Source of the DNA: Chlorokybus atmophyticus
Taxonomy: Eukaryota > Plantae > Mesostigma and Chlorokybus algae
Assembly: GCA_009103225.1 (NCBI GenBank)
Contig: RHPI01002161.1
Span: forward strand, 1-58,971
DNA: 58,971 bases
Direction: 5' to 3'
A model generated the notes under the pieces. The model was not told where the DNA came from. It saw nothing but the letters and a program-made list of their open reading frames with translations, and searched no databases. Positions 1 through 55,081 of this stretch are shown here, piece by piece. Both the position numbers and the translations under genes were made by a program. How positions within the stretch are numbered: the first letter of the stretch is position 1; each line of letters starts with the position of its first letter.

Positions 1-74
1 CAGTACCTAATGCAGTATCGATGCAGTATCTATTCTGAGGCCAGCATAGTAAGTAATGCTCTTGGTCGGAGCAG

Positions 75-2434
75 GTATGGCTCGCACGGTTGTATGGCAA
101 TCCACATGCCGCCAATGGCTTCAATCTCCAGTGCACTGGTGACGAGCACAGCTTTGGCCATCCTTCCACGGGCGATTGGTGGAAGGATGTGGAGGTGGAT
201 TTGAGGAGAGAGGTGGGGGAAGCGTCCTACTTGGCGCCTGCCATTCTGTACAGTGACAAGACCACGCTGGACAGCGCGGGCAAGCGCTCTGGCTACCCTC
301 TGATGGCATCGCTTGCCAACTACAGTTGGGACATGTATGCTAGCAACATGGGGGTTGTTATGATAGCGCTTCTGCCGGTGGTTCACGCAGTGGCCGGGCA
401 TCCCACCTGGGCGCAGGGCAAGGAATCGTNACGTGAGATTTTTTATGACGCTGTGAATGTAGTGTTAGGGGATGTGAAGCGGGCGAGTTGGGAAGGTCTG
501 CAGCTCATCGACCCGAATGGCATCGAGCGTCGTGTGTTTCCCGCGCTTGCCAACTACATCAGCGATTTGCAGGTAGTGGGCATGAATGGTTGTAACCGGA
601 TGCAGCCTGCCAGCAAACAGTGCATGGAGGATGTTGTCAGTAGAACATCTGAGTTTGTCGTGTTGTAGGAGACTGCCACACTCGCACGCACTGTGTCGGG
701 CAACCAAACACGACATCCTTGCGATGTTTGTCTCGTCACCAAGTCAAATCTATTGGAGATGGATGAGGACCGGAAATTGAGAACCGAGGCCTTCTACACT
801 CCAGCAATACGTCAGCTGCGGGCGGACCTGCATAGCGGTGTTAGGAATGCACGCCAGACAGCCAAGGCTTTCAAAGAGCAGCACTCCATGCATGTCGAGG
901 AGGTAATGGTCAAATTACCGGCATTCGTGAGGATGAATGGCTTTCCGTGAAACCAGGTAATGTGGTTTGGCAACAGAATGCACTGTGGGGTTGGCGACAG
1001 TCGCGGGTGCCGGGAGCTGACTGCTACTCTCGTCTTGCCCCTGACGCAATGCATGTGATGGGAGGCATTATTGACCACCTGCTTGCTGCTGTGTACGACG
1101 CCGTGAAGGAACGAAGGCGTCCGTCCACGAGACAGATTCTGCAGGCCAGGCACGTTTTTGGTGTTGCTTTTGTGTTGAACACAAAAGCCAACAACACGTG
1201 CTCACGAGCAGATGTGCACAGGCTGAATGCATGCAAGGCGACTCTGCGGGTTTTGCACTTCAAGGCACCCACAAGCACTGTAGATTTCTTCCTGTCCGAC
1301 CACTCCTTTCAGGTGGTGGAGAAAGTGGCGGTGCTGCAGCTGCTGCTGGTCCTCGCAGACGGTTTGCTGCTCGACAGTGAGGGCAACGATTTCTTCACCA
1401 TTGCTGCCGCATCGCTTGCCCAGTGGAACAAGAAGTTGCTCAAGGCGCATGAACACACAAGAGAGACCCTGACCACAGCCGACAACGAGCTGGCTGCCTT
1501 CAAAGCTGCAGTGTTGCATCCGCTACTGTCGTCATATTCTGCACAGAAGTCAGGTTGGAAGATCGAGAAGATGCATCAGCTCACTCATTTTGGGCCGGCA
1601 ATTGTCAGCAGTGGACACCCAGATTGGTTCAGCGCCAACCGCATGGAGCAGACGCACGCCCAAAATATCAAACGGTGGGCGCGTGGTGGCAACAACCGGG
1701 ACTACCAGGCACGTATCCTGAAGGCATGGAGCTGTGCGGAATATGTGAGAGAGGATGGCATGGTCGTGGATCCCGAGATGCGCTCGGTCATGGCGCAGGC
1801 GCGGCAGCAGTGCTGTAATGTCATGGAGAAGACGGACAAGTTGCTACGGATGGATGTGCTGACAAGGAGGGAGTCCAGCCCGTACTGGAGCGGATCTGCG
1901 CGTAGCCGCCAAGTCGCCTTGAAGACTCCATTTGCCGACAAGCTGCCTGCCACCCTGGACAGCTGGTTGAAGAGGGAACAATTGGAGTTGGCCGACGGGT
2001 GGCGTGCTGTTCGCGTGGTGAACGGAGGCGCAGCGGTGTACATGACAATAGGAGTCAGCATGGCGCGCGCAACTGGGATGTTCCATGGGCGGCCTTGGTT
2101 CTCTACACTTGAGTTGGAAGGTGATGAGGACGGTGTGAACGTGACGTGGTGGGCTCAGGCACTCCTTTTTCTGCGCGTGGTGGTGTGGGGTGGTAGCGGC
2201 GAGCGCGTGTGGAAGGAGGTCGTGTTTGTCCGCTGGTACACGAAGCTGGATGTGACGAGCGACACAAAGTGCATCGCTCTGGAATGGGAAAAGCGTCGAG
2301 GCGGTCCACATCTCGATGTCGTGACTCTGGAGCAAGTAAAAGGCATTGTCCAGCTGCTCCCCATGTTTGACAAGGACAGCGCCCGTGTACAAGAGGGCAA
2401 GTATTGGGTGAACGTTCACTGCACTTCCACGTGA
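75..2434 (+). CDS. Plavaka-family transposase (spliced; 5' part probably upstream of window)
   Basis: Motifs HPSTGDWW, PAILYSDKT, GYPLMASLAN, ISDLQE...CDVC, PDAMHVMGG, KMHQLTHF...FSANRMEQTH, and a C-terminal BAH-like region (FHGRPWFS...VFVRWY...VQLLP). In-phase GT-AG introns 573-668 and 903-976 join ORFs 90-668, 693-950 and 947-2434; a probable in-frame GC-AG intron lies at 1150-1221. One N at 430. Confidence 0.85.
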
Positions 2435-2637
2435 CACATGTACTTGTCTCACTACTCTGAGTTTGGAGCATATCAGTCAGTTAGGCATTGCTAATCGTAT
2501 GCTAAGACTTTTGCATGTGGACGTGTACAATACCGGGCAGCTGTCACTGCACAACTGTCACCACAATCGAATGATCCATGCAACATTCAACAATCAGTCC
2601 GCCGTGTGGCATTAAGCATCAATACGGTGCACCACAC

Positions 2638-4366
2638 TCAAGCCTCATAGTTCCATGACACAGGAGGGTAGTTACAGCGCATATCCATTGTTTCAAGCAT
2701 GAGACGCCCTATGCACTCCGCCATTGCGGGAGGAACTGCATTCGCTATGGAAACGGCCGAGGTCATCCATGGCACTCCCAGCGCTGTTTGCCACGCAGCA
2801 ATGCCGCCCCTGGTGCTTGGAAGGCCATAGACCGGGTACATCTGCTGTGGCGCGTTTGATGTCACGATTGTCTTCTTCGCGCTAGCGGACAGGTGCGGCG
2901 ATAGCAGTCCAACTGCCTTGCCCGCGTGCGAGCAGCGTGCTGGTGGGGTAGCTACCACTGGCTGTGTCTCAAACAGACGGTGTCGGAAAGTTGATAGGCC
3001 AAACATCGTGCCACAAAGGGACAGATTGGGTCTGAATGAGGAAGCTGCTCCTGGCACATTCTCAATCACAAACTTGACCTGGCTTGCAAGCAGCAGACGT
3101 CGGACGAGCGGTATCATATCCTGGTGTCTCCAGGATGTGCCATGTGCCGCCCGTTGAGGTGCCGGGATAGCACCTGAATAGGCCTGGCATGGTGGACTGG
3201 CCCAGATGAGCTCGTACTCGCTCAGCTCTCCTGCACTCAGGGTGCATACATCGCGGTGTATGAAGGGCAGCGGGTACTCAGAGGAAGGACTTATGTCTAT
3301 CCCGGTCACGTCAAAGCCTGCGTGGTATAGACCGACACTGGCACCGCCACCGCCGCAGAATAGGTCGAGTGCCCTTGGTCTGCGTGTGCGTCCCAGCTTG
3401 TTGTCAAATGGCGTGTATGTGGTCAAGGCTGGCCGTGGTGCTGGCCAGGGACTAACAATGATGCCGTCCGGGCTTACTTTGCGACTGACGTTCTCCCCTC
3501 CGGCGCGCAGAACATGGCGTGCCCCGTCAACTGATGTGTACGCGAATACGTTGTGCCCTTTGAAGTTGATGGTTTGTGGTCGATCACCGTCATCGAATAC
3601 TATACGGTGCTGCCCTGCAAAGACATTTTCCATTGCACCATGCATATATGATGCGTCCTCAATCTCGCACGCCACGAAGCGATGCTGACCTGACGCTTGC
3701 TTGAATGATTCCACAACGCCCGCATACCATTCCCCATCCAGCGGCCAATGCACCATGACACTCACACCGATCAGCTGCTCGCATCCCAACTTAACTGCGT
3801 TCCGCAGCCGATGCAGTGCGCTGTCCAACGGTCGATGGTCTGCCTCCTCTACAGCGGCCAGGGGATGGAACTGCCCACGCCCACACCGTGCAAGACTGCT
3901 CTGAATGCGACAACAGCTTCAACATGCATGAAATAAGCATACGCCCAACATAACATGCAGTGATACGTCGCGGTCCACTCTTGTGGATTACCTCCACAGC
4001 ATCCACCACCTGTCCACTAACCACATGTCCCGGTGTTGTCCATGTGAAGAAGCGCATGGGTTCCCCTCGCCACTCGAAGCATGAGCGCGAGCACGATTCG
4101 CACACGCACTGCACGCAATGGAAAAACTCGGGTTCCTTGCACAGCACTTGGCCGAGGCGGCAGCCAAACACGTCGACATTGTGTGTGGTGTGATGCCAGC
4201 AAGCAGCACTAAAACCGTGGCACACTGTCTGCACTCGCTGGCATTCGGTCAAGTGTGCTCGCATTTGCTGCCTACGGCCATTGGCACATACGTACGCATT
4301 GCATTGTGGGCACACCAAGCATGGTCTCCTAGGTGAGGGTGATTCAACTGCTGCCGCCGACATCAT
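2638..4366 (-). CDS. Cys-rich domain + Tudor domain + C5 cytosine DNA methyltransferase fusion (3 exons, ~520 aa)
   Basis: MTase motifs I (LDLFCGGGG), IV (WASPPCQ), VI (IENVPG), VIII-like (FRHRLF) and X (ANAVPPAMAECIG) are intact. Tudor-like segment LIGVSVMVHWPLDGEWYAGVVESF...GQHRIVFDDGD is restored by removing intron 3615-3689. Phase-0 intron 3901-3991 (GAG|GTAATC...TTCAG) joins the Cys/His-rich ORF 3791-4366 in frame. Confidence 0.85.
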
Positions 4367-4427
4367 GCAAAATAGGAATCGGCACGGCTGCCCACAAACT
4401 GAGCGAGACTTTAGGGTATGGGCATCA

Positions 4428-4458
4428 ATTTAGGGTTGCCAGCTTACGAACCCTAAAT
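4428..4458. promoter_or_regulatory. Inverted pair of telo-box-like motifs upstream of the MTase gene
   Basis: ATTTAGGGTT (4428-4437) and AACCCTAAAT (4449-4458) form a perfect 10-bp inverted repeat; a third TTTAGGG lies at ~4410. The pair is 60-90 bp 5' of the start at 4366. Confidence 0.4.
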
Positions 4459-4501
4459 GGGTCAAACTTCAAGTGAAGCACGACTGTACCTTATACGCTA
4501 T

Positions 4502-4541
4502 TGCAGTACCATGCATGGTACTGCAGTACCATGCATGGTAC
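4502..4541. repeat. Tandem palindromic repeat
   Basis: TGCAGTACCATGCATGGTAC x2; 4502-4525 is a perfect 24-bp palindrome. Confidence 0.9.
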
Positions 4542-4866
4542 ATCAACATGAATGGTACTCCATCTGTTAATGGTACTACAGTACAAGGATACTCGCATAC
4601 TACCACGATCGTAGAGTAATACTGTGCTGTCATGCCATGGAACCCAGAGCGCTGTCCGAGTTTGTTGCTGTCAACCACGCTCTAAACCAGCGAGGTATGC
4701 AAGCCATGCACTGACTCATGCGCCGGGCAGTCATCATACACATGTACAGCCAATGCTTCTAACAACAGCAGATCTCTGGTGCACCATGCACCATGCTGCA
4801 ACTATACATGTACCCACATGGTTCACAGGAAGCCAACACAAAACTACAATACATGCACAATTGGCA

Positions 4867-6082
4867 TCAAGGCGGGGGCCAAATCACCGCCGACACGTTG
4901 GCGTCTTGCATCAGGCGTGGCGACCAAAACGGGTGAGGTTGCTTGCAGAATGGACACGCTTGTAGATTCTTTGATTTATTTGCCACAGTCTTCTGATGTG
5001 CTATGATGCAGACATGGCACATCGCTTTCTTGCAACAGGGCGTCTCCCCATCCGCTGGGGGGGGTGGCTCTTCAATGCGACAAATCAGCACACATGGTGC
5101 ACGCGGGTGTGCAAGCTGCCTCTGCCACCAAACTCTGTTATCGCGTCGCAGGCGTAGCGACTCCCATCTGAATGGCGCAGCATAACGCTCCACTGCCTGC
5201 TCGATCACCTGACGCCCATCTGCCGCCATACACCACCTGCTGGTCTTGGTGGTCTCGTCCAGCATGCGTTCATCCAGGCCCTCGACATGGCTGTCGTCAC
5301 TCGTGTACTCCCCCGCATCGTCATTTTCTTCGAGCTTCCACAGAATCAGCTCGACGTGCCGTATGACATACAGCCACTGCCAGCCAAAGCATGCCAAGTA
5401 CAGCTCGAATGGTTTTACTTGCCACCCAGTATGTTTGCTCAGGTAGTGGCACACATCTCGACCCGCATTAGTCAACATCGACAGGTACATCTGCTGCAGC
5501 AGGTCGAAGTTCTGCTCCGCAGATAGCTCTTGCACATTGCCGGGGTGCTGCGGCAGCAACAACACCATCATATCGAGGACGGCGAGGGGCAACAACGTAC
5601 TACGGATGGCCATATCGTGTATGGGTTCCAACCACGGCCAATCCCCATAGGTCTGTTTAAACCGCATTCTCCGCGTTTGCTCCCACTTATTGCAAACTTT
5701 CGTCACCCACCTCGAGGCATGCCGCATGCGGTGATGCAGCGCGTCTTGGGCGTACTGTAGGGTGATCAACTCCTTTGCACTACGAGTCAGCCCCCCAAAG
5801 CGTCTGCGCGTCGGTGCTTTGAGCTTAGGCAGCTCGTGCCGCACCGGCTGTCTCTCTGGACGATGCTGAGCAGCCACTTGACGCTGTAAACCCGCCTGTG
5901 CCTACTCAGGACACACAGTCAGCCCCAGTGAGGCTTCAAGGCGCTGTGCTTCTTCTAATGTTGTGACGATGCCTCACCTTTCCTTTTTTGGTCCCGTCAG
6001 CGTCCTTTGTTCCAACAACCTTCTTCTTTTTTTTTTCACCCTGCACATCCTGGCAGGCGCTTTCCGTGGCACTGTCACTCAT
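4867..6082 (-). CDS. Protein with C-terminal RING-like zinc finger (2 exons; either its own gene or the 3' part of the OTU gene)
   Basis: C-terminal CVLIC-x14-CCKKAMCHVC-x18-CPFC. Phase-0 intron 5902-5977 links ORF 4867-5877 to an upstream Lys-rich exon starting with ATG at 6082 (MSDSATESACQDVQGEKKKKK). Confidence 0.6.
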
Positions 6083-6088
6083 AGGAGG

Positions 6089-8930
6089 TCAGGCGTTATC
6101 TTCTTGCTCCACAGCCTTGCGCTTGTTGGTTGCCTCCCATTCCTCCACGACCTTATGTTGCTTCATGGGGTCGAGCATGAAGCCTTTGTCTTTCAGCGCA
6201 GCTTTCAGGATACCTCGATCAATCTCTTTACCAACAAGACAGGCTGGGATCAATGTGGCAAGCTCAGAGGGAGAGGGCGAGCTACAGCTGCTTCTTGATG
6301 GAGATGCCTCCGGATGGTCAGAGTGCGGTGGCAAGTGAGTCTCCGCGGCAGGAAGGGAGGGTGCTGAATTGGGATTGCGAGCATGTGGCTGTGGTTGAGG
6401 GGAGGCAGGATGTGCAGAACACTCGGCTACTTCTTGCCTAGCACACGAAGGCGAGGCCTGAGGCGTTGGCGCAGCACTCTGGGTCACAGCCGGTGGTAGC
6501 GGGGAATTGGCAACGCCATTCCGCCACTCTCCGATCAGGTGTGTTACCTCCGGTGGCACTTCATGCATAGGCCACGACCACTGTTCGGTGCTTGCAGGCT
6601 TGAGGAGCCAAAAGTGTGCTTCTGGCTCATCAGGAGCAGTGTTGCCCACCACCAGGACTGAGTTGGGGGCTTCTTTATTTCCAACCCAAACTGCGCTGCC
6701 GGGCCGTGGCACCCACTCCCCATGCTCGCGATGAACGGTCACGCAGCCAATCAACAAGCCCAGCTTGTTGGCAAACATGGTCATCTGCAGGTGCTCGACG
6801 TACATATCTTTTCTCCGCACGATCTGTCGCACCTTGACCATGGCTAGGTCAATGTTGCAGTTGATATCAGCCAACATGGTCGCAGGAAGTTTGTCGTAAA
6901 ACTGCGCCATCTCTCCCGCGGCACCAGTGGCTCTGCAGAAGTCTAGGATTCTGCTCGCCACGCCTGCATCGACAGCCTTGGCGGTGATTTTGCGGAGAGT
7001 GTGCCCCCTGCCGTCGTCGTCCATGGTGTCCAGCATGGCCCAAAATCTGCTCGAGCTGGGGCACTTGTGATCATCCAGGACACTTTGCGCTATGGATGGC
7101 CTGGCGCGAAATACACAATGGTAGAAGCAATTACCATCCGTTGGCGCATTGAAGTGGTCCCATGAGGCGAGCTGGCCACCTAGCATGACTGATGGCCGTA
7201 TGCGGGTTGCGGCCAGCTCCTCTGATGACTCGCTGGCAGGTGGTGACCCCTGCTGCATGCGCATACAGCACTCACATGGTGTGTCCAACTGTGGACGGCA
7301 AGAGTCACAGTGACTGATAAAGTACCTGAGTTTGGGGCAGACTGCCGGCTTCAACTTGCAGCGGGTGGGGTAAGGTAGGTGCAGAAGCCACATCGGTTGT
7401 TGCATTGTGCTGTGGTCTCGCCGGTGGCGGCAAGAAGGATTGTTGCCCCGCAATCACCGGTGCTGCTCGTGGAGGAGATGGCAGTGCATGAAGGACTGGT
7501 GCCGCGGAAGGTGGTTGCGCTCTGGCTGGGAGGGGAGCAGAAGCTGCAGGTGAGACCACTTGTGCATGCAGCAAGGGGGGCTGTATACAGGACCCAGGAT
7601 AAGATGGCTCACAATGTTGCAAAGGACGAATATAAGCTTATGCAGTGCCTGACGCATTGTTACCAAGGCACGAGCATAAAAGACAGCGACTTACCTCAAT
7701 GGCCCGTGGGCTGCAATTAGCAGGGGAAGCCATGGGGGCTGACAAGATGGTATTGGCTGCACTCTCCCCGCCACCCTCAATGGCAGACTCGTCACGGAGC
7801 TCTTGAGCCATGGGCACATCATGCGCCACTGCCCCAATGGACATGTTGGGATTCAACAGGCCAACATGCATGTTAAACTGATGCCGCATTGCCGCCGCGC
7901 CCATCAGCAAGTGGGATTGAAGGACCAGTTGATGGGATTGAATCCAGGCTTGCATAGAAGCTCCAACAGGACTTAGTGCACTGTGGTGCTGTCAACCAAT
8001 ATCATGTGGGTTAGCTGCATGCTTGCGACACTGCAATTGCAATAGTCAACTGCGTCGCACCGTCATCAGTTGGTTGCTTCGAACAGTCACCTGCGGCATT
8101 GCTGGTTGATGCACTAATGATTGCATAGACTGCGTCATTGCTGGTTGATGCACTATTGGTTGAATGCCGGACGAATGGCCACGCGCTCCTGTGCTCAAAC
8201 CCAGCCTACTTCGTTCGGCACGCGCGCGCGACTTCGCACGCTCACGCACATCCTAGCATGGAAAGGTAGGCATGCATTGGAGCCGACATTGCAGTCAACA
8301 TGCACAGCGAGATTGGCAACAACATACCGCCGCCCAGCTTTGTCTATCTGCTTGCTTCCGCAATGTCGGCTTGACTGTAGGGTGTGTATGGGTGAATAGT
8401 GGAGGTCTGCAGCCACGCTACATATATCACATGGACTGCGCTAAAAAACAAATTGCTCTTGCAAGGAAATGCATGTGACTGTTGAGCGTACCTCTGCATT
8501 CCTTTGTGCTCGTTCCCACAGCCGCAATTGGTCCCGCATGGTTCTGACAAGGGGCTCCAAGAACTGCAGCTCCTGATCCACTCCCTGTTGCAGAAAGCGA
8601 GCCACCAAGCAGCTCTCTGTGAAGATGGTCTTTAATGGCTTGCCTGCTAATTTGTCAAATGTTGGTGATGCATGTCGGACAGCCCCATTGCTGACGCCTG
8701 CCATGATCCATGACGTGGCGACCGGTAGTAGCTGGCTTCGCTGCTTGAACTCTTACGACCACAACTTCTCGCAAGATGTGCCACGCCGCCGCCGCCGCCG
8801 CCGCCTCCTCCGACTCCTGGTCCTCCGCCTCATAGTCGAACCCAGGCCCATCAAGCCTGACATTCGACCCGTCATCGACCTGGTGCCCCTACGTGCCATC
8901 ATCCGGCCATCAATGAAGCGTGTTTGGGTG
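6089..8930 (-). CDS. OTU-like cysteine protease (deubiquitinase) domain protein, multi-exon; N-terminal exons uncertain
   Basis: APTDGNCFYHCV (OTU Cys box) and downstream EAHFWLL (His box). In-phase introns 7253-7325 and 7581-7694. Further exon-like ORFs at 8046-8249, 8441-8704 and ~8730-8930 were not fully joined. Confidence 0.65.
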
Positions 8931-8963
8931 AGTGCATGCTAACTCCCATTTGGGCTGATCGAG

Positions 8964-9088
8964 CAATGGCTCTGTCGTACCATGGATGGTACGACAGAGC
9001 CATTGTACGGCAATCGCTGGGGTTGGACGAGAGATGCCTCTGTCGTACCATAAATGTTACGATACAACCATTGGTAACAATGGTTGTA
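8964..9088. repeat. Perfect hairpin cluster
   Basis: CAATGGCTCTGTCGTACCAT-GG-ATGGTACGACAGAGCCATTG (20-bp stem, 8964-9005) and TACAACCATTG-GTAA-CAATGGTTGTA (~9063-9088), with recurring TCGTACCAT motifs. Confidence 0.9.
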
Positions 9089-9307
9089 CGAAGCATGCAT
9101 GGCACGAATGCATAAATCGTACCATCAACCATAGGAGCAAGGACGCACTACAAGTGCGACTCTAGTGCGGGACTCTAGACGTTCAAAACCGCCTCATTTT
9201 CGTTTTCGCGCCTCATACATTCGGGCGGGCCAACCGGCGGCGGCAGCGTTGGAGGCGGCAGCGCCACTTACAGCTAAACAGGCGGCACCCGACTATCAGT
9301 TGGAGAG

Positions 9308-11135
9308 ATGCCTCGTGGTCCATCCGTAAGTGCACCTCGTCGTGGAGGTCGGCGCCAGTTGTCCACATTGCCCCCAGTGTTCAACCAGGCAACCGTCGCC
9401 AACCAATCGCAGCAAGACCCCGCGCTAACGCCCAGCACATCACAACAACTCCACATAACACCGCAGTCGCAAGGGCAAGCTAGACTGCATGCGTTCTTGA
9501 TGCACTGTGCACGTTGCTTCTTGCTCAACTTCTAACTTGGATGCTTGCTTCTATCATGACTAGCACAGTGACTCACTGCATGCGTTCTGGATACACTGTG
9601 CACGTTGTTCTTCTTTTGCAACTGTGAGGGTTGCATCTTTCATGGCTGGCAGCATGACTCATGTGGTTGTGCTTGCAGAGGGTCGATTGGAACCCCCAAC
9701 CCAAACGCATTTGGCCGTGACGTGGCAACCTCGGCCGTCAGCAACCCTTCCCCAAGCAAGTGGAAGATTGGCAACGAGGTAAGCACTGTGTGACACTGTG
9801 ACACTGTGTGTATGTGTGTAACGGATTGTTCTTCTGTGGACAGCATTTGCGAGATGCCGTCGTTGAAATCATAAACGGCCACTGGGTAGAGAGCCACGTT
9901 TATCCCAAGGAGGACACTATTCGTAACGTCATGTGTCAGGTGCTGTGAATGCTTCATGACCGCACTGCACCGTGACACTGACCAACCTGCCCGTGACAGG
10001 TAGTTGGCTTCGACCATGACGACGAGGCCGATGCGGCCAAGTTCTATGAGGTGTACTGGACTCCCAAGGAGTGCCCCTTCCACTGGAGTGTCGCCCTGAA
10101 GAAAGCTACGCAGGTCCGGTCTGAGAACGTCACCAAGATCAAGCATGTCCTTGAGAAGGAGTACAAGTGGACACTGTTTAACAGCAACAAGCGCAAGTGA
10201 GTTGGGTCCCTCACCACCATGTCTGCTATGCAACACTGCCTTCTTACTCAGCCTCCATACACACGTACTCATCTCGCCTATTGTAACCGATTCAATCAGG
10301 CACATCGACGCCCTAATGGACCCCGAGACCCAAAAAGCCCAGATGCGCAACGCGCTCCAAAGTAAGTCACAGGCACTATTCTAGCCTGGTGCAGGCTCAA
10401 CTTGAACTATCTATTTCGTGACTAATGCCTTGTCGGTATGACTGTCGCAGACAAGTCATGGCGGAGATTTGAGGTGACCGACACTGCAGACCCGGAGCGG
10501 AGGAGATACATCCATGAATGGGGCAATCCCATAATCTGGCAAATGATCGTGCAATGCTGGTCTTACGCCGTCACTACACCTGGTCGCCGGCAGCTGACAG
10601 TCAACCACCTCGCATACCTGTTGCTTACGGTGAGCACTCTGAACTCCATCATTAGCAATTCAGGAATGCTGTAGCCCCAAACTACAGGCTTGCAGACGCG
10701 TTGCAGTGAATAGTGGCTTTCGATGCCACTAAGACATGCCTGTAAACTACGCAGGTGGAGCGCATCCTAAAGGGCAAGGATGGAGACCCTCTCCTAGCTG
10801 CCAGCATAGACACACATGAAGAGTACCTCAGCGAAATCAACACCATGATCATGTCAATGAAGCGGGAGATGAGGCAACGGTACGCAGCCCTCCAGCCATT
10901 CACCCTTGTGAAACGCCGCACTGCATCTTGTGTCGAATACCTGAAAGATCCCAATCGGCGCCGGCCGCAAGAGACAGCAGCTCGTGACCCGCTCGCTGAG
11001 GCAGAAGCGGCATTTGATTGGCTGGCACAACCGTTTGAGGAGGAAGAGCAAGCTCCGGCGTCTCCTCCACAGGCCCCAGCGCGTGGTGCTTTGTTCCGTA
11101 ATGACGAGACCAGCGATGATGGAGAGGAGCTGTAG
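9308..11135 (+). CDS. Intact 7-exon orphan gene inside the transposon (393 aa)
   Basis: Exons 9308-9474, 9679-9778, 9844-9939, 10000-10196, 10300-10361, 10451-10629 and 10755-11135 join with matching phases into an open 1182-nt CDS; the first intron is GC-AG. No domain recognised. Confidence 0.7.
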
Positions 11136-11534
11136 CGCAGTTGGTAGTCCGTTTAGCTGGTAGTGTACATAGCTACAAGGCTCTTGTGATTGAGTGTTGT
11201 GCATCTTAAACCAGCTCAGCCAATCGTCATTATGCTCATGCACATCAATACTTGCATCCTAATGATATACAACAGAACTGCATTCGAGTCACATAATCGA
11301 ACTACAAGCCTTGGCAGGTGACTGAGAGACACTGTACACATTTCAGGTACATGTACACAGCACAGGCACATAACAATGCTGGAAGTCAGTGACAGTCGCG
11401 TGTAGTCAAGCTATGCAAATACATATGACGACAGTTAGGCATTGGTCACCTTCAGTTGTTAAAGAATGCCTTATTTTGTCGATAATTACCTAGTTGGTGC
11501 TTGTGAATTAGGCTTAGTCGCCTGCGCTGGACTG

Positions 11535-11860
11535 GTGTGTAACCTGCAGGTGCCTGTCACATAGGCTGAGTTACCTAAGTAAAACTGATGTGTAACTTAC
11601 AGGTGCCCGTTGATTAGTTGTAGTCACCTGTTAAGGCCTGATGTGTAACTAACAGGTGCCTGTAAATTATATATACTAACCCTAACCCTAACCCTAAATT
11701 ATATAATGTCACCTGTTAAGGCTTGATATGTAACTATTAGGCGCCTGTTAGTTAGGCATAGTCAACTGTTAAAGACTAAATTGTAATAAAAAGGGCCTGA
11801 CAGTAACGAAAGTTACTATTAGGTCCCTGTATCAAGATTACAGGTGGCCTGAGCCACGAC
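11535..11860. repeat. Degenerate ~53-nt tandem array (subterminal repeats)
   Basis: 4-5 units with core GATGTGTAACT-n-CAGGTGCCTGT...GTCACCTGTTAAGGC starting near 11535, 11586, 11639 and 11724. Confidence 0.8.
11676..11695. repeat. Interstitial telomere-type (CTAACC)3 repeat
   Basis: CTAACCCTAACCCTAACCCT flanked by a direct repeat TAAATTATATA (11663-11673 and 11695-11705). Confidence 0.85.
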
Positions 11861-11959
11861 AGTCTAAATTAGTGTCCTCAGGTGCACGGCCGTTGCCAAA
11901 ATTTGGTCGGCCGGCAGGGAAAACATATTGCGACGGTGGCAGGCTAACTGTCTGCCTGG

Positions 11960-12252
11960 CAGAGTGCAACAAAGCGGAAGACGAGGTAAGCATGTGTATG
12001 CTGATGGGCTAGTCCTCTGGCAGCACGCCACTCTTACAGCATAACCAAATGCAGGTGGTCACTCTCAAAGCGACCATCAAGCGCATGCGCGTGCACGGCG
12101 AGGTGCTGACATTCAAGCTGAAGGACGAAGTAGCCGATGTATTGTCAGCGAGTGAGGCAGAAGATGACTCCAATGTTGAAGCAGAAGACTTGTCGGAGGA
12201 GGAACAGGAGGAGGGGGTTGAGGAGTTCAGAGGCAAGCACCAATGCGCATGA
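11960..12252 (+). pseudogene. Spliced acidic gene fragment within a segment rich in AACGGC repeats
   Basis: GACGAG|GTAAGC donor at ~11985, ATGCAG| acceptor at ~12054 and a D/E-rich ORF to 12252; no start or domain recognised. Confidence 0.3.
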
Positions 12253-13781
12253 GTACGACAGCTAGACTCAATGTTGTAGGTAGTTTCATGTGCAAGTCGG
12301 CTGCTCAGTTGCCAGTGGACATACTCTCACCACGACTGGGACATTGTATATATTGTGGGCTTATAGATGCAAGACCAAACAATCAGTCCAAGGTTTGTAC
12401 AAGCTGCATGGCATGTTAGTGTTGGCTTACGGCAAGAATTGCCAACTTTTGTCAAACGGCAAGGGTCACATATTAACAGCAGTGTAACGGCAAAGAAACT
12501 GACGGCTACTGCTGTCAGCTGTCCGTAACTACCGGCTAACGGCCGTCTGTGCACATCGACAAAAGGGTAACTGGTTGACAACTCTCGGCCGGTTAGTGCC
12601 ACTGACAACCATTTTCGGCCCGCGGCCGTTTGCGTCAGTCCAATCAAGCCAACGGCAAACCCAACAGTCCAAAAATAACATTTCAGGCAGCGGCAAGCAG
12701 GCTCAGGCAGGCTCAGGCACCAGTCAGTCCCTTAGTCCTTAGGCAGTCACTTAGTCCTTAGTCAGTCAGTCACTGTGTAAAATTTGCAACAAATAAATAA
12801 AGCGTGACGAGCGTGATGAACATGGCGTCACGGATTCAATGCATAACGTAATCATGTTGAGCGTGATGAACGTGATAGGTAGAGCGTGATGCGCAAGGCG
12901 TGGTGGGTAGGAGATGCTCGTTCGTAGCATAAATATTCTCTTGATGTTTAAAAGTACATAATATGCTCTTAAACACGCAGAGAATAACGTCGTTGGTAAT
13001 ATACTATAGCTCAAGATAAATGATGCTTTTAGCGAGGATAGATTGTATAATCTCAAACCGCAAATGCGGCGATTGAAGCTAACACGGTCGGTTGAATGTT
13101 ATAATTAAGTTATCAACAAGATTGTCAGCTTACTATTTATTAACATGTATAGAGCTGTTCGATTGAAAGCTTATAAAGTTCGCTGATGAGTTCGAGACCG
13201 TTTCTCCACGTCGTAGTGCTGCCTAACAATAACACTACAGTTCAACCCTTTCTTGATGTCCCACTCGCTGACATGGTCAGAAGTGCGTTTAACTCAAGCG
13301 CTATTTGATAAAACTGCACACAAGTCGTGACTGAAAACACCGAGAAAAAGTTGATTGATGAATGACAGCACGTCAAAGGTATGGGCAGGCAGGCGAAATT
13401 GGAGCAGGAGCAAGCTCGTAAATGTATTGTGAGCATAATGCCGAGTTGAAATGACCACGGCTCTATTGAAGGCTTCTGTCTCCACACAAGTAACTGAATA
13501 ACAAAGAGGAGTACACCCCTCTTTTGTGCAGATAGCAGTGGCCGTGACACGTACGGGTCGCCCTTCTTCGAGCTCAAGGGCAAGCGCACTGGGTCTCCTT
13601 CACGGCGTTGAGTGTGTGCCCGATTACAACCACACCACACACACAGCTCCCGTGCGTACATTTGTGTTGACGGGTTTGCATAACCACTGATGCTGTATGC
13701 AACACGTCAGGCCGAGGCAAGGAAAGGTTTGGGCGTTACGCGGTCTGCAACGCATGTTTGTGATATCTCAATGGGGATTCG

Positions 13782-23623: not shown

Positions 23624-26600
23624 ATGGCGGGCGGAGGCGGAGGTGGCGGCGAGGGTGGTGGCCGGCACACCTCAGCCGCTGCGGATCCGCGCAGCAGCGT
23701 GGCGGCGGCGGCGGCGGCCGCAGCGCTGCCCGTGTCGAAGGCCGCCTCTGCATCTACCTCCACCACGCCTACATCATCCAAACCATCCACCCCGCGCTCC
23801 CCCAGGTACACACTCTTGACCGCCTGCCTTGCATGCACACCCAATCAGTCGGCTTCTGGGTGGCCGGCTGGCACGTTACAACACGTTAGCAGATGATATG
23901 GACACCTACATTGATATTGCTTGCTGGTGATGAGTTTACACAATAGTCATGTTATTGAAGTAAGACCAACTGCCGTCATCGAGTATGAAGATAGATTCAG
24001 GCAGCATTGTCGCCATGTGCATTTATGTGGACTACACTACACTTGTACTGCAGCACTTGTGTCACACGAGTCGTGTGCGGTAGTGGGGGATATGTATGCT
24101 TTATCCTCATTGCGTGTGCTATGTTAGGAACAATGGTGAGGTCCGGCCACAGCAGCCTCAGCATCAGCAACAGAGGAAGCCTAGCCGATATGCTCCTGGG
24201 CCGGCGGGTGGCTCGGTGGGTGTGCCGTACGTGCAGGACATGGTGTCTGAGATGGGCGACATCGACCACATGATGGACGATGACGACGACGAAGGCCGCT
24301 TCACCATCGACGGAGAAGTGGACAGGCGACCCTGGGACATCAACACCATGATGGTCACCGGCGGCAGCGCCGGACGCCTACGCGCACGGGTGAGTGAGAC
24401 AGGTGGAACGTTGTAGGATGACAAGCGCACACGCATTTGTATGCACACGCATATGCGCACAGACAGATAGGCGTGAGTGGTAACCCTCCTTCCTGCTTTC
24501 CATCACACAGGCAGGTGATTATGCGCCATCGAGTGCGGGGTCGTACTCGGACAAGGCGTTGGACGCTAGCCCTGTGGTTTGCGGCGTGTGCGCTGAGGCG
24601 ATCCCCGAGCCCGACGCCCACGCGTTCTACCCGTGCGAGTGCGCCTTCCGCATCTGCCGCGACTGCCAAGACGGCCGCAAGACCAACGCTGTCACCAACA
24701 CCAACACTACCAACAACAAGGACAAGGACGGCGTCCTGCGCCACTGCCCCGGTTGCGGGCAGCCGTACGCTGAGCAGATTGCGAGGCGTGAGCGCGCAAG
24801 AGAGGACGACTACGTGGCTCACGGCACACCGCGCTCGTTCACAACAAACACATACTACGCGCCTTCTTCCACAGGCGCGCACTCGGACGCCGAGCACGTG
24901 CGCCGCTACGTGCGCGGGGGACTCCTGGGCCACGACAACAACACCAACACCACCAACAATAAGGATATGTCTCCCGCGCTGGCGGCGGAGGACACGAGCG
25001 GGTCGCTGGTGTCGGTGGCGTCGTACGGCTACGGGAGCGTGTACGAGGTGCCTGGAGAGGGTAAAGACGGCGTGAAGCAACCCGTGCTTGCCCCGACACC
25101 ACTCTACCGCAAGATCGCCATGCCATCACGCTACATTCAACCATACCGCGCGCTGTGTCTGTTCCGTCTGGCGGCCACGGCGGCGTTTATCAGCTGGCGC
25201 GTGCGCAACCCCAACCCCAACGCGTACGGCTTGTGGCTCGCCAGCGTCTTCTGCGAGGTGTGGTTCGCACTGTCGTGGGTGCTCGACCAGGTCCCCAAGC
25301 TTCGCCCCGTCAAGCGAGAGACCTACCTCGCACGCCTCGGTGCTCGCTACACCGACTCCGACACCGATGAGACCGACAAGGACCATCTCCCCAGCGTGGA
25401 CGCGTTCATCACCACGGCGGATGCATCACGCGAACCACCATTGATCACGGCCAACACTATTCTCTCAATCCTAGCAATGGACTATCCGGCGAGTAAATTG
25501 ACGATCTACCTCTCTGATGACGGTGCGTCCAAGTTCATGTTTGACGTGATGGCCGAGACGGCGTTGTTCGCGCGCCTGTGGGTGCCATTCTGCAAGCGCT
25601 TTGGTGACGTGGAGCCGCGCCAACCCGAGGTGTACTTTGCGCGTCCCATCGACTACGCTGTCACGCGCGACAACCCCGACTTCGTCAAGGCACGCTTGCG
25701 CATGAAGCGCGCGTACGACGAGTTCAAGCTGCGTGTGGCCCACCTCGCCCAACTCACAAAGAACCCACCACCCGACGGGTGGAAGATGCACGATGGACGT
25801 GCGTGGCCGGGCAACAAGAGGTCAGACCACGAGGCTATCATCCAGGTGTTTCTACCCACACGGCCCCAAGTCACGGCGTCTAACCCAACACCCGACCCGG
25901 GTGTGACCGACGTGGACGGCAACCCGCTCCCCGCCCTCATCTACATGTCTCGCGAGAAGCGTCCCGGCCACTACCACAACAAGAAGGCCGGCGCGATGAA
26001 CGCGCTCGTGCGCTGCAGCGCGCTCATCACCAACGGGCAGTTCATCTTCAACGTCGACTGCGACCACTACATCAACAACTCGCGCGTCGTCCGCGAGGCG
26101 CTCTGCTTCTTTCTGGACCCGCTCAAGGGCCACAGGGTGGGCTACGTGCAGTTCCCGCAGAAGTTCGACGGCATCGACAAGTCCGATCGCTATGCCAACA
26201 ACAACGTCGTGTTCTTTGACGCTAACATGCGCGGCCTCGATGGCTGCCAGGGACCGCTCTACGTTGGCACGGGCTGCTTCTTCCGCCGACAGGCACTCTA
26301 TGATCGCAAGCCACCACCCGACCCACTCGCACTCGAGCGTGTTCGCGAGCGCGACCGCAGCTGCTGGGCCAAACTATGCTGTTGTTGTATCGGTGATACA
26401 CGCCGTCGGCGCTCCTCGCGCGAGCACGATTACGAGGCCAACAACAACCTGTCTATGTCGAGGTCCGCGTCCAAGATGCAGCTGATGGCTGTGGACGAGG
26501 CGTTGACGGGTATGCAGACACGCATGACCATGGACCCCATCTTGGATGATCGTGTGGTGATGGACGGGTCCGCCAAGTTGTTGATCGCCAACCCGCTCAT

Positions 26601-27627
26601 GCGCAAGTTGGGCATGTCCTCGCACTTTGTGGCGTCCACTTTGGCGGTGGATGCGTTGCCCGCGCAGCGCCTGGCCCCGCGCGACCTTCTTGCCGAGGTG
26701 GTGCTGGCCATCAGTGCTGATTATGAGGACTCGAGCGAGTGGGGTAAGCGCGTCGGGTGGGTGTACGGCACGGTCACTGAGGACGTGCTCACGGGCTTCT
26801 TCCTGCACGCCAACGGGTGGCGCAGCGTGTACCACACGCCGGAGCTGCCCGCGTTCAAGGGCACCGCACCCACCAACCTCACCGACCGCCTCGAGCAGGT
26901 GTTGCGTTGGGCCACGGGAAGCATTGAGATCTTTTTTTCGGGCAACAACCCGTGGGTGGCACGCTACGGCAGCGGGCTGAAGCCCGCGCAGCGTATTGCG
27001 TACATGGCCACCATGTTTTACCCCTTCACGTCGCTCGCGCTGGTCATGTACTGCGTGCTTCCCGCTGTATCACTCTTCATCAACCAGTTCATCGTGCCGG
27101 ACATCGGCATAGAGGCCGTGGTGTACTACGCGTGCCTGTTCCTCAGCATCATCGGGACCTCGCTGATGGAGATCAAGTGGTCTGGCGTCACCTTCGATGA
27201 CTTCTGGCGCAACGAGCAGTTTTGGGTGATATCCGGCACGTCCGCTCACTTTGCGGCCGTGTATCAGGGTCTTCTTAAGAACACGCTCGGCGTGGATATC
27301 GCCTTCTCAATCACGCAGAAGGCCGACGACGCCGAGGAGGAGTTCTACCTCGTCAAGTGGTCGTGGCTGCTGTTTGTGCCGCTCACCATCGCCATCATCA
27401 ACGTGCTCGCGCTCATCGCGGGCATTGCCGCCGAGGTCAACAAGCAGGGCAACCCACAGTGGGGGGAGCTGTTTGGTAAGGTTATCTTCAGTCTGTGGGT
27501 GCTTGTTCACTACTACCCATTCCTCAAGGGACTCATGGGACGACGCTCGAGGCCACCCACTATGGTTATCGTGTGGGCCGTCCTGCTTGTCCTTGTCTTC
27601 TCCGTCTTCTGGTCCCGCGCGCTCTGA
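23624..27627 (+). CDS. CSLD: Cellulose synthase-like protein, CslD/CesA-like (GT2; 3 exons, 1186 aa)
   Basis: Exons 23624-23805, 24128-24389 and 24511-27627 are in phase. RING-type Zn finger CGVC...PCECAFRICRDC...CPGC; TADA, SDDG, NVDCDHYINNS, TED and QVLRW catalytic motifs; plant-conserved region; Cys-rich class-specific region; C-terminal TM helices. PCECxFxIC and the NTMMVTGG segment resemble CslD. Confidence 0.9.
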
Positions 27628-28797
27628 GAGGACGTGTACTCGTAGAATGCACGCATGCACACGCGCACGTACACATTGTGTACCCGTTGTACACACGCTG
27701 TTGTTGCTGCTAGTGACCCCAGCTCTATCTATTGTTAGCGTAGTCTTGACAATGCTCGCACATTTGCGCTGGTAATAATACATTGCCTGGTTGACACTGG
27801 CTGATTTTCTACCGTACGCACAGTTTGCACAGTCGTCACACTGTATGTACTCCCGCGTTGCACGTGCGGTTGAGAAAATGTTGGTGCCGCTCGTATTTCA
27901 GATGTGTTTCTTCTTGAAAGCTGGTGTGCAACCGGCAACAATCAGAAACATGAGAGGTAGACAGTTGAGTTTACATATCTGCGGAGGCCTACCGCATGTC
28001 TGCAGATAACTTCACCATGCAGGTCACATTCATGTTTCCCAACCGCAGGCCAGAGTTGCACCACTCCAGTGCCTGGCGGACACATCTTGCCACGCACAAC
28101 ACCGCTAGCTCATGCCGCTACTGCTGCATGGCATGTAAGGGCCCAAGGCTTCTAGCTCACGCGTAGCCGTACACAATCTTGAATCACGACGCGCTATACA
28201 GCAAGCAGGACGCATGCAATAAAAGTTGGTCGGTAATCAACCTATTGATGATTCAAGCATGTTGGCTTTAGTTGAAAGGGGTTGGGGTGGGGAGCGGTGG
28301 ATGCGGTGCAGCGCACTGCTGTGTGATGCAAAGCTATATATAGTCCACTCTTTACTTTGTTACTTCAACGCACAGCACATCCCTACAGTGCAGTACTCTT
28401 TCAAACCCGCCTCGGCCCTTGTTGCCATCACCAGAGTTGATACCACGGACGGCCATGCCATGCATGTGTGGTTCACCATGGATGACGGTGACTGTTGGCA
28501 TTACACATAGCACAGCACAGCACACTTTGGGGCTTGGGCCAGCCCTATTGCTTGTTGCATGCATTGCATTGCACTAGCATTGGCACTTCCTTGCGATTTT
28601 ATGTGGTCAGCATACACGCGCACTTGAATGAAGCTCAGTTTTGATGCAGTTTTCAGTGAAGTACGCAGATCTGCAACGCATACACAATCACAATCATTGT
28701 GTATGCGCGTGTGTGCATAAAGTATACATCTTATATGACACATAATGTAAGCATATGTCACGTACTCAACACTCAATACGCACCAGGATTAGCTCGC

Positions 28798-28829
<32 letters not shown>

Positions 28830-29747
28830 CTGTAGTCAAAGCAGTTAGGAACAGCTTCCACTACGTCCAAGGCCCCTTCCATACACAACACACACCCATC
28901 TGAATGTGTTATAAGGAATTCCCTATACCTACTTCTCTTTACTGTGTTTGCATGGTGCCCATCCGTTTAACACACCCCCGTTTCATGATGGGTGGGTCCA
29001 ACTTTCTTGCCGCATCGGAGGTTGATCATCTTACAGTGTAGGGTATACTCCCCAAAGTTGGGGATGTTTGGGGTTTTAAGGGTGGCGTGCGCGTCATTGA
29101 TTATTTGGCGGACATGTATATATATTATGTGTAGCTTAGGATTGTTTGCCACACAGTCATAATTATTTTATATTTTTTGGCCACCTATAACGCGAGTTAC
29201 AGCGCGCCAAAGTTGAGGTGTGACGGGTGTCAGCCCGCCAATCAGCGAGCCCGAACTTGGGGACTCGAGACAGCTGCCAAAGGCTGTCAGCCTCTGCCAA
29301 CTCTTGCTGAGGGCTATCACTTTGCTGCCCGCAGCCATTCTGGAGTGGCTGCGGGCTGCTTGAGCAGGCTGGGGGGGGGGCAGGCGCATCATGGTGGTGA
29401 TGGCTGTGATGTGCAGGCATTTCCACTGCAGGCATTCTTTGCCGCCAAGACCACGCTTTGGCGGCAAAAAATGCTGGCATTGTGCAAGGTTTCAATCAAG
29501 CAGGCGGCGACGTGAGCGTCTAGGGCGGCATGCAGGTCCAAGGCGGCATGCATTAGGTCACAGCTTATGTGTGTGTGTGGTTTCTTGTATGTACAGAGCA
29601 TGCAGGTAAAGAGGTCTATGTAAAACTAATCTTAGGTTATAAGGGGGTTGGACTGCGCTTGTGTCTTGCATGTGTGGGGTTCTGTCGCCAGCGGGAGCCC
29701 GCCTCCTTGGCGAGGTTGTTGGTTGGGGGATCAACACGGAGGTGGCG

Positions 29748-44900: not shown

Positions 44901-45012
44901 GCAGATTCACATCACAACTTGAGTGGTGGACCTCAATTCTCGATCCCACTGCTCCATTGACCGCTTATTGGCGGGCGCACAGGCCTCCACGACAGCGGTC
45001 ACGCCGGGGCAC

Positions 45013-53161: not shown

Positions 53162-54489
53162 ATGCTTCTTCCCCACCGCACTCACCCTGCCCACCCTCCC
53201 CTCTGGCTCCTCCTCCTCCTCCTCCTCCTTGTCGTTGTCCTTCTCGCCGGCGTCCCCAACGCATACGCGGGCCGCCTACCGAGGAGGCCGCAGCTGCTGG
53301 CAGAGAGTGGTGATGGCGATGGTGATGATGCGGGTGAGCAGGTGTTGAGCAGGACTGCGGGGGGCGTGTTGTGCTATGAAGGCCGCGCGGTGCCCAACCT
53401 CTTCCTCATAGGCGGGCAGAAGTGTGGGTCCACCACCCTCTGGGGCTATGTCGTCAGGTGTGTATGTGTGTATGTGCACTTGAAACTAGTATTGCTACTG
53501 GTTATATTGACACGCTTGTGCGTGTGCTTCCGCAGTTGGGAGTTTGGCAAGGGAGAGGTGAGCCCTGTTGCACAAGATTATGCGTAGCAAGACCCGAAAT
53601 TATGCATAACAAACCAAAGCCAGCACTGCTTTGTTGAGGGTGCAGGTGTGTCCCTGTATGCTGAATGTGTGTGCACTGCGGATCATGAAGCAGGTGTTCA
53701 AGTATACGAAAGAGATTCATTTTGCAGACCAGCCATTGCTGCCGCGCACCACGCCGGAGTGGTTAGCTGCATATTCAGAGCACTTCCCCGAGTGCTCGGA
53801 CCGCCGCCTCTCTGATGAGGTGAGAAATGACTTTCACTGATGAATGCCATTGCAATCACATTCTCAATTGCGACATTATGAAATCGCGTGCACACACGCA
53901 CGCAAGCACGCACGCGCCTGCCCGTGAGTGCCTGCCTGCATGTGCCCAGGCACGCACATACATGCAGCAAGCACGCGGTTACACACGGGCACGCCCGCAC
54001 GGACACGCTCGCGCCCACACACGTCTGCATGGCTGCACACACATGCATTCATGCGCATGCCCGCATGCAAGCACACGTCTGCATGGCTGCATACACACGG
54101 GCGCACACACACGCACCCATGTGCATGCTCTCACTTGCGCATGCGACTGACTGCACGCACAACATACCCATACCCACGCCCCTGCAGAGCGTGCGTTACG
54201 TGATGGACAGCACCCCTGCGTACGTGCGCACGCTGAGCGCGGCGCTTCAGATCGGTCGTCACTACGCCCGCCACGGGCTTACCGCAGGTCTCAAGTTCAT
54301 GGTCTCCCTGCGCGACCCCGTCGAACGCACACTCTCGTGGTTTGGACACATCGGCCGACTGCAGGAGAAGATACCGTGTGATGTCACGTTTGACATGTGG
54401 GCCCGAGAGGCCGTGGTGCAGGCGCGCAACTGCATGGACGCACACCAAAACCTCCCCAAAGCACGGGTATGCAACTCATGCCGTAACTC

Positions 54490-54526
<37 letters not shown>

Positions 54527-55081
54527 TGCGTGGGCAGGAAATCTTATGACTGTGTGCAGGTGTATGAGGAGTGTCGGCCATCTGCTCTGTTAGACTCATG
54601 GTACGCCATTCAGTTGGACCCGTGGTGGAGGCTCTTCCCACCTCAGAGGCAATTCCTCGTTGTGGACTTTAACAAGTTGGTGCACGAGCGCGACGCCACC
54701 ATCGTGCGCGTGCTCGACTTCCTCGGGATCGACTACAATCTCCCGCTCCCCGCCACTATTGTGCACAAGAAGCCCACATCCGAGCTCGGCATATGCGCAG
54801 AGCATCCCGCCCCAAGCATGTCCAACGATACACATGCCATGTTGGTGGAGTTCTTTCGACCGCTCAATGAGCAACTGAAGGTGTTGTTCGAGCGGTATGG
54901 CGTGAGAGAGTGGTTGCCGATGTTTGTGACGGGAGAGGGTGGAGGTGATGTGGAGGAGGAGGATGCGATGGATGCGAATGATGATGGCGAGTTGGAAGAT
55001 GATTGGGAGCTTGATGAGGAGGATGTTGATGACGTTGCTGGTAGGTATACGTATAAAGGTGATGAGGACTATGATAGGTAA
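53162..55081 (+). CDS. Secretory-pathway PAPS-dependent sulfotransferase (HS3ST/NDST-like Sulfotransfer_1 fold), 5 exons
   Basis: N-terminal hydrophobic signal/anchor; 5'-PSB loop PNLFLIGGQKCGSTTL, KEIHF, DSTPAY, 3'-PB SLRDPVERTLSWF, SWYAIQLDPW...F, RVLDFLG; acidic tail. ORF 53888-55081 includes intronic CA-rich sequence at its 5' end. Confidence 0.85.
54489..54525. repeat. (ACA)n microsatellite in sulfotransferase intron
   Basis: Directly visible. Confidence 0.9.

Follow-up and report, generated by a model that had tools for sequence, protein, structure and literature searches.

The stretch of DNA analysed here, contig RHPI01002161.1 of the Chlorokybus atmophyticus assembly GCA_009103225.1 (positions 1–58,971, forward strand; the whole of it is the 59-kb window referred to below), opens inside what is probably a giant DNA transposon. 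Positions 1–11935 would be the right-hand ~12 kb of a multi-copy, cargo-carrying element of the Plavaka lineage (CMC/EnSpm-related), whose left end lies beyond the window. The cargo of the element would consist of (i) a gene that joins a Cys/His-rich domain and a Tudor domain to a C5 DNA methyltransferase, (ii) an OTU-like open reading frame (ORF) and, beyond one in-frame TGA, a second ORF whose tail is rich in Cys and His, and (iii) orphan genes. Copy number and boundaries were examined by placing Logan contigs from four public runs on positions 7000–12999 of the window, with the exclusion of two short internal repeats (8777–8819 and 11667–11704). All the runs used are contigs, none of them RNA, and the exons, introns and splice sites described below were deduced from DNA.

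Transposase and methyltransferase genes

Two convergent genes lie tail to tail at the left of the window, 203 nt apart:

1–2434, plus strand: gene of a Plavaka-family (CMC/EnSpm-related) transposase with several exons, matching PF18759; its 5′ part lies beyond the window start
2638–4366, minus strand: gene whose predicted product (~510 amino acids) has a Cys/His-rich part, then a Tudor domain and, last, a compact C5 DNA methyltransferase; probable exons 4366–3992, 3870–3690 and 3614–2638

The assignment of the transposase came from the plus-strand ORF 90–668, which matches the Pfam family PF18759 with an E-value of 2e-21 (77 bits against a cut-off of 26.3, profile positions 83–228 of 325) and is on that ground homologous to the transposases of Plavaka elements (CMC/CMCT clade). 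Reading of the frame translations by eye identified as candidate motifs of the catalytic region ILYSDKTTL, LIDPNG...ANYISDLQ|E, the CxxC in HPCDVC and PDAMH, the N-terminal part of the protein being off the window. Excision, also by eye, of a GT..AG intron of ~100 nt restores the sequence ...SDLQ|E..., after which the CxxC follows. An earlier reading of the same letters, referred to here as the original prediction, had described a spliced Plavaka-like transposase, and both the PF18759 match and the restored SDLQ|E bear it out, in a gene that is cut by the window edge. Pfam gave no match in this gene to the final third of the PF18759 profile, and a word-index homologue search with the C-terminal ORF 947–2434 (495 amino acids) detected no homologues. 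The only N recorded in the gene is at position 430.

The minus-strand ORF 2638–3828 of the second gene matches PF00145 (E 3.9e-6, 27 bits against a cut-off of 22). Motifs I (FCGGGG), IV (PPCQ), VI (ENV) and X (NAVPP) are intact, and together with the family homology they identify the predicted product as a C5 cytosine methyltransferase. Splice sites were assigned through GT..AG signals, reading phase and the gain of a Tudor match. This procedure placed introns at 3991–3871 (121 nt) and 3689–3615 (75 nt), both of them in phase, and left no internal stop codons; the first exon corresponds to 125 Cys/His-rich amino acids. Before splicing, neither the Tudor region nor the Cys-rich N-terminus gave a Pfam match at E-values up to 10, and an exact-protein look-up of the exon-1 ORF returned no match. 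After excision of the 75-nt intron, the Tudor region matched the PDB entry 7de9_A (E 8.7e-10, ~47% identity over 45 amino acids, including the W-P..D..Y.G.V and YDDGD blocks) and the Tudor of 53BP1 (E 5e-4), and scored 22.4 bits (E 1e-4), under the cut-off of 27.2, against the Pfam family PTM_DIR17_Tudor. Because the Tudor match appears only once the in-phase GT..AG intron has been removed, the methyltransferase gene is probably a spliced eukaryotic gene; the homology to 53BP1/PDS5C-like Tudors of solved structure is contingent on that same splice. We take 7de9 to be a Tudor of the plant PDS5C/RDM15 type, presumably a reader of H3K4me1 in RNA-directed DNA methylation. The Tudor-fused C5 methyltransferase convergent with the transposase had been foreseen in the original prediction, and it is upheld by PF00145, the core motifs and the 7de9_A match obtained after intron removal. 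From its sequence the gene is a firm call and apparently intact. Of the domains that had been named, profile searches thus recovered PF18759 and PF00145, and gave no OTU or RING match and, for the Tudor, a Pfam score that stays below the cut-off even when spliced.

The homologue search with the methyltransferase retrieved 3311 proteins, with a best E-value of 8e-62. The nearest relatives share 38–48% identity with it, are compact (~220–370 amino acids) and in several cases carry a fused MBD; the protein search, which included JGI data, found none that exceeds 48% identity. Of five contigs with such relatives that were inspected, one belongs to a phage and has genes for terminase and Mu-F. The other four are giant-virus-like: two of them, copies of a single stretch, carry topoisomerase II and kinases, and the remaining two carry SNF2-RING genes and a gene for a PLOD-like glycosyltransferase/2OG-oxygenase. 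No transposase or Tudor domain was present on these contigs among the Pfam families recorded for the called genes. By sequence similarity, then, the methyltransferase appears to be of phage or giant-virus ancestry and the Tudor to be plant PDS5C/RDM15-like. The MBD is fused to the closest relatives on giant-virus-like contigs (L001 at 8803–9858, L002, and L005 at 2028–3050), a pairing of reader and writer that parallels the Tudor fusion.

Copies, shared motifs and right end of the element

The features that connect the parts of the element and delimit it on the right are the following:

4506–4558: cluster of the palindrome GTACCATNNATGGTAC (two exact copies and one degenerate copy), 140–190 nt upstream of the methyltransferase start codon
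8977–9105: second GTACCATNNATGGTAC cluster (one exact copy, one with one mismatch and one degenerate), between divergent minus- and plus-strand open frames
11496–11830: subterminal array whose units, of ~53 nt, each contain an inverted repeat (CACCTGTTA...TAACAGGTG); clear from 11496 to 11760 and more degenerate to 11830
11817–11935: terminal segment and right end (...AAAACATATTGCGACG), located by contig breaks, with the pentamer TAGTG at 11870–11874 inside it
11936–12790 (855 nt): right-end fragment of a different multi-copy repeat, identified from contigs and not part of the element, which appears inserted into it

Contig mapping demonstrated that the sequence from the 5′ end of the OTU-like ORF to the array (7000–11935) is present in many diverged copies, which the unique flank does not accompany. 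At 90–100% identity, 400 contigs of run X2 and 201 of run X3 were placed on 7000–12750. The contigs of run X1, of 977–1634 nt and ~1% divergent, span 7004–11666 in the order of the window with short gaps, the widest of ~200 nt. The flank at 12800–12999 had zero contig coverage in any of the four runs. The longest contigs among those listed have no differences from the window over 9660–11108, as against ~1% in 7000–8800. For 7000–11935, the hundreds of variant contigs indicate multi-copy cargo rather than a set of single-copy host genes. Self-comparison of the window, at both the DNA and the protein level, found no second copy or fragment of the element. Four short contigs of the element (152–206 nt, 98–100% identity, low depth) were also found in run X5, which is labelled as a different organism (organism D); this could reflect a shared element, a close relative or cross-contamination.

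Differences between the window copy and the other copies are mostly transitions. The observed/expected ratio of CpG is 0.75 in the element, as in other repeats of the window, against ~1.1 in a cellulose synthase (CesA) gene of the same window. The excess of transitions and the depletion of CpG are compatible, if weakly, with methylation of the repeats.

The link between this multi-copy part and the left half of the element is provided by the 16-nt palindrome GTACCATNNATGGTAC. Four copies with at most one mismatch exist in the window and all of them are inside the element. Because clusters of GTACCATNNATGGTAC are common to the region upstream of the methyltransferase and to the multi-copy part, and to these only, the two are taken as one unit.

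The subterminal array named in the original prediction proved to be real, with units of ~53 nt over 11496–11760 and a degenerate continuation to 11830; four matches were counted against 0.6 expected. The number of units differs between copies, as shown by a joint of 11616 to 11739 in contigs. A telomere-like (CCCTAA)3 at 11678–11697, the centre of a 24-nt inverted repeat, interrupts the array. These hairpin-like units may serve as putative binding sites for the transposase or an accessory protein.

At its right boundary, position 11935, the element reads ...ATATTGCGACG, with the terminal 8-mer TTGCGACG and the last letters ...GCGACG. One contig tracks the window to 11935 and then continues into unrelated sequence, and two contigs enter from unrelated sequence at 11938. 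Other contigs enter at 11817 and 11857, which indicates that the last 80–120 nt occur in other contexts too. The original prediction had ended the element in a CACTA-type TAGTG at 11874. The pentamer is present, at 11870–11874, and is internal: this candidate was rejected on the basis of a 164-nt contig (11748–11911) that bridges 11874 and of the breaks at 11935/11938, and the true boundary lies 61 nt further to the right.

The other copies of the neighbouring repeat end in ...AAAATTTGCGACG and are followed by three different flanks, and the window copy reads ...TTTGCAACA, that is, with two CpG-to-CpA changes. Self-comparison detected neither DNA nor protein similarity between 11936–12790 and 1–11935. 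The subterminal regions of the two cannot be aligned, and they have in common only the terminal 8-mer and motifs of the CGGCCG type. The occurrence of TTGCGACG at two repeat ends that were located independently suggests that the termini are related and that one element is nested in the other. The left end of the element is expected to carry the inverted terminal sequence CGTCGCAA.... The segment 11936–12790 also contains a 3′ exon that ends in an acidic tail (stop near 12250), subterminal motifs rich in CGGCCG and, at 12721–12774, a 19-nt tandem repeat.

The remaining reading frames and the rest of the window

Between the methyltransferase gene and the array, the element contains the following reading frames:

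4867–6082, minus strand: ORF with a Cys/His-rich C-terminus (“RING-like”); probable exon 1 at 6082–5978, intron at 5977–5902 (76 nt) and exon 2 at 5901–4867
6089–7453, minus strand: OTU-like cysteine-protease ORF of 454 amino acids with a Pro-rich C-terminal half, ending at the TGA 6091–6089
7454–8976, minus strand: several open frames, which may belong to the OTU gene as 5′ exons or form a gene of their own, multi-copy in public contigs and without domains
9300–11135, plus strand: orphan gene or genes, with open frames at 9997–10197, 10100–10381, 10426–10671 and 10746–11132, an acidic C-terminus and a stop at 11133–11135

The OTU-like call comes from the loop NAPTDGNCFYHC, which could be aligned with the catalytic loops of two PDB structures of OTU domains from viral L proteins, at an E-value of only 0.23. 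In this weak match TDGNCFYHC lies over the GDGDCFFHC of the viral structures, and the EAHFW found downstream is a possible His loop. The neighbour of the ORF in the ESM Atlas is an OTU cluster of the Nucleocytoviricota (giant viruses), with a score of 0.92 and 176 shared features. The other searches were negative. There was no Pfam match at E ≤10, the word-index homologue search was empty, an exhaustive search of 1.84 billion representative proteins returned no homologue and only a Pro-rich low-complexity match, and the single-sequence AlphaFold model of the region was unusable (pLDDT 34), so that neither family-level homology to OTU (PF02338) nor an OTU fold was found. The name OTU-like is therefore a tentative, unproven call. 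Of the deubiquitinase that had been proposed, the motif of the catalytic loop, the Atlas match and two weak PDB matches survive, and a confident assignment is unsupported by Pfam, homologues or fold. Because the queries with this ORF and with the C-terminal part of the transposase found nothing, the proteins of the source genome seem to be absent from the searched collections.

The ATG of the Cys-rich ORF is located two codons past the TGA of the OTU-like ORF and in the same frame. This second ORF had been called a RING-type E3 ligase, a designation that is unsupported: it gave no Pfam match at E ≤10, the spacing of its tail (CxxxC...CC...CHxC...CxxC) is not the cross-brace of a canonical RING (C3HC4/C3H2C3) and the single-sequence AlphaFold model of the tail was unusable (pLDDT 39). 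Its matches in the ESM Atlas, with scores of 0.88–0.92 and low feature counts (112–144 shared), are a lead only. No domain and no homologue was found for the open frames of 7454–11135 on either strand, and Pfam searches with eight orphan frames gave nothing meaningful. The intact seven-exon orphan gene of the original prediction is reduced to protein-like plus-strand frames at ~9300–11135, without homologues, of a putative gene or genes. One contig of run X2 joins 9530 to 11296, skipping 1765 nt (9531–11295), and may represent a deletion derivative that lacks the plus-strand orphan gene.

The rest of the window contains both host genes and other repeats. An unbroken plus-strand ORF of 1022 amino acids at 24559–27627 encodes a cellulose synthase of plant type (PF03552, E 2e-286). 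Its N-terminus has the RING-like zinc finger that characterises CesA proteins; the gene fits a streptophyte host, and its CpG ratio of ~1.1 is unlike that of the repeats around it. At 29748–30830, on the minus strand, there is an ORF with a DDE_1 (pogo/Tc1-like) transposase domain (E 4e-20), and the lowest CpG ratio of the window, 0.35, was recorded at 30001–32000. The segments 28226–28964 and 34032–34577 are 76–79% identical in the same orientation and are apparently old copies of another repeat. Further along, an AT-rich island (GC 0.35, amid 0.5–0.6) occupies 43001–45000, and a plus-strand ORF of 397 amino acids at 53888–55081 has weak sulfotransferase-domain matches (E 3e-6).

Alternative explanations and comparison with known systems

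Several points weigh against the interpretation of 1–11935 as part of one transposon. The evidence of multiple copies drawn from contigs covers 7000–12999, and positions 1–7000, with the transposase, the methyltransferase, the Cys-rich ORF and most of the OTU-like ORF, are linked to it by the shared palindrome. The right terminus is the only one seen, since the left end falls outside the window, and with it any terminal inverted repeat and target-site duplication. Published Plavaka termini read TGT..ACA or CATCA..TGATG, with a target-site duplication of 2–3 bp, and the clade generally has CA..TG (PMC12730594); unlike them, the right end ...GCGACG matches none of these forms, although the published termini are fungal and those of algae may differ. 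The gene models were built on DNA, all runs being contigs; the TGA between the OTU-like and the Cys-rich ORFs may mean that a gene, possibly one for an OTU/Cys-rich fusion protein, is broken in this copy; and the OTU and RING calls have no family-level support.

In an alternative reading, the block of methyltransferase, OTU-like, Cys-rich and orphan genes would be a separate mobile, duplicated or non-autonomous cassette, beside or nested with the Plavaka transposase, so that the sequence would be a composite of at least two elements. The accessory cassette of red algae is reported to move between families of transposable elements (10.1101/2025.02.11.637652), the right terminus is not a published Plavaka terminus (PMC12730594) and nesting is evident at 11935/11936. 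Against this, just 203 nt separate the transposase from the methyltransferase, tail to tail and with no visible repeat boundary, and the GTACCATNNATGGTAC palindrome is common to the whole block, which makes a separate cassette rather unlikely. The viral affinities of the cargo raise the question of whether the block is instead a fragment of an endogenised giant virus (Nucleocytoviricota) that lies beside a transposase by chance. The closest relatives of the methyltransferase are on giant-virus-like contigs, with their topoisomerase II, kinases, SNF2-RING and PLOD-like ORF, and on one phage contig, and in the Atlas the OTU-like and Cys-rich ORFs have mainly viral clusters as neighbours. However, the genes contain short, in-phase introns of spliceosomal type, the Tudor is of plant type and the methyltransferase is only 38–48% identical to the viral enzymes. 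In addition, no other viral hallmark gene is present, no similarity to the OTU-like or Cys-rich ORF occurred on the viral contigs fetched, and the block, which exists in many copies, has a transposon-like subterminal array at its end. This origin is very improbable.

That the genes other than the transposase are ordinary single-copy host genes adjoining a transposon can hardly be maintained. Open frames, introns and a host-like GC content would be expected of such genes, but the hundreds of variant contigs over 7000–11935, from which the unique flank is absent, speak for a repeat, and the lack of homologues among 1.84 billion representatives would be odd for a conserved host gene. The CpG ratio of 0.75 also resembles that of the repeats of the window and not that of CesA, with ~1.1.

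If 1–11935 does belong to one Plavaka-lineage transposon, the transposase would cut and paste the whole unit. The Tudor would tether the methyltransferase to chromatin that bears a methyl-lysine mark, leading to 5-methylcytosine (5mC) on the element itself or on nearby DNA, and this self-written 5mC could tune the expression of the element or help it to escape recognition by the host. Ubiquitin marks or protein stability would be the targets of the OTU-like and Cys-rich proteins if these are indeed enzymes. A function of the whole as the silencing-control kit of the original prediction is hypothetical. A more general proposal, which is possible but on present evidence doubtful, is that of a portable chromatin-modifying cassette, made of a Tudor reader, a 5mC writer of giant-virus ancestry and a pair of ubiquitin protease and ligase, that would be carried by unrelated cut-and-paste families (Plavaka, Academ) and edit the elements' own marks. 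Such a cassette, if it existed, would write 5mC and in this respect be the counterpart of the TET/JBP genes that fungal Plavaka elements carry.

Enzymes that act on DNA methylation and are carried by transposons bear on the co-evolution of mobile elements and host silencing. Fungal DNA transposons are known to carry erasers of 5mC (TET/JBP), retrotransposons to carry writers of the DNMT3 type and giant transposons of algae to carry N4/N6 methylases; a C5 writer joined to a plant-type methyl-lysine reader on a cut-and-paste element would add to this set a reader-guided writer. The host belongs to the lineage of algae nearest to the land plants, a setting in which RNA-directed DNA methylation and Tudor proteins that read H3K4me1 are relevant. 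The element would also be a concrete case of a giant-virus or phage gene domesticated by a transposon with the gain of introns and a eukaryotic reader domain, and the encoded proteins are small enough for direct biochemistry.

Comparison with known systems places the element close to several of them. The novelty that had been claimed for it was overstated, since red, brown and green algae are known to have giant transposons (Plavaka, EnSpm, KDZ and Sola) with accessory genes for a DNA methylase, SET or a 2OG oxygenase (10.1101/2025.02.11.637652; PMC12477816). No Tudor-fused C5 methylase or OTU-like cargo on a cut-and-paste element was found in the literature searched. Plavaka elements have been reported in streptophyte algae, without cargo (PMC13519894). 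In fungi, Plavaka, KDZ and EnSpm elements encode TET/JBP dioxygenases (PMC12730594; Iyer et al., 2014, as cited there). The transposase lineage is the same and in both cases it accompanies an enzyme that acts on cytosine methylation, but the fungal cargo removes or oxidises 5mC whereas the cargo described here would write it. Retrotransposons of dinoflagellates and Klebsormidium (LINE, DIRS and Copia) carry a DNMT3-type domain inside the polyprotein, for which self-methylation has been proposed (PMC5890265). These are also transposable elements encoding a C5 cytosine methyltransferase; in contrast, the present one belongs to the cut-and-paste class, and its methyltransferase is of phage/giant-virus type, fused to a Tudor and encoded by a gene of its own.

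With the C5 methyltransferases of phages and giant viruses (P0001–P0008; contigs L001–L005) the enzyme shares 38–48% identity in the catalytic domain and the same compact layout, but these genes are intronless, lack a Tudor and in some cases are fused to an MBD, whereas the gene of the element has introns and a Tudor. Virus-derived “orphan” DNMTs without companion domains are known in eukaryotes (PMC12344493). The Tudor resembles that of PDS5C/RDM15 (7de9) at ~47% identity over 45 residues and differs from it in being joined to a DNA methylase and not to a cohesin-associated protein.

The closest parallels in general organisation are the giant elements of other algae. In Ectocarpus, giant EnSpm, KDZ and Sola-1 elements contain a gene for a ParB-N4/N6 methylase, similar proteins being cited for green and red algae, and their accessory genes are transcribed (PMC12477816). 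Like them, the Chlorokybus element exceeds 10 kb, has its DNA methylase on the strand opposite to the transposase and is involved in nesting, which is frequent there; unlike them, it has another class of methylase, other companion domains and a host of another lineage. In the red alga Bostrychia moritziana, giant Plavaka elements of 17–19 kb with three accessory genes (PAG1–3) make up a third of the genome, and the cassette moves among families of transposable elements (10.1101/2025.02.11.637652). One accessory gene encodes an N6 methylase with SET and another a ParB-like protein with a 2OG oxygenase, the third being of unknown function, and tandem inverted-repeat arrays occur alongside (10.1101/2025.02.11.637652). 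Pfam searches detected no similarity to SET, ParB or 2OG domains in the element described here. Both systems have a Plavaka transposase, are well over 10 kb long, occur in many copies and have several accessory genes for domains that modify chromatin or DNA, with an inverted-repeat array near one end. In contrast to the N6/N4-type (PF01555) methylase-SET and ParB-2OG genes of the red-algal elements, the cargo of the Chlorokybus element would combine a C5 (PF00145) methyltransferase-Tudor gene with OTU-like and Cys-rich ORFs, and its host is a streptophyte.

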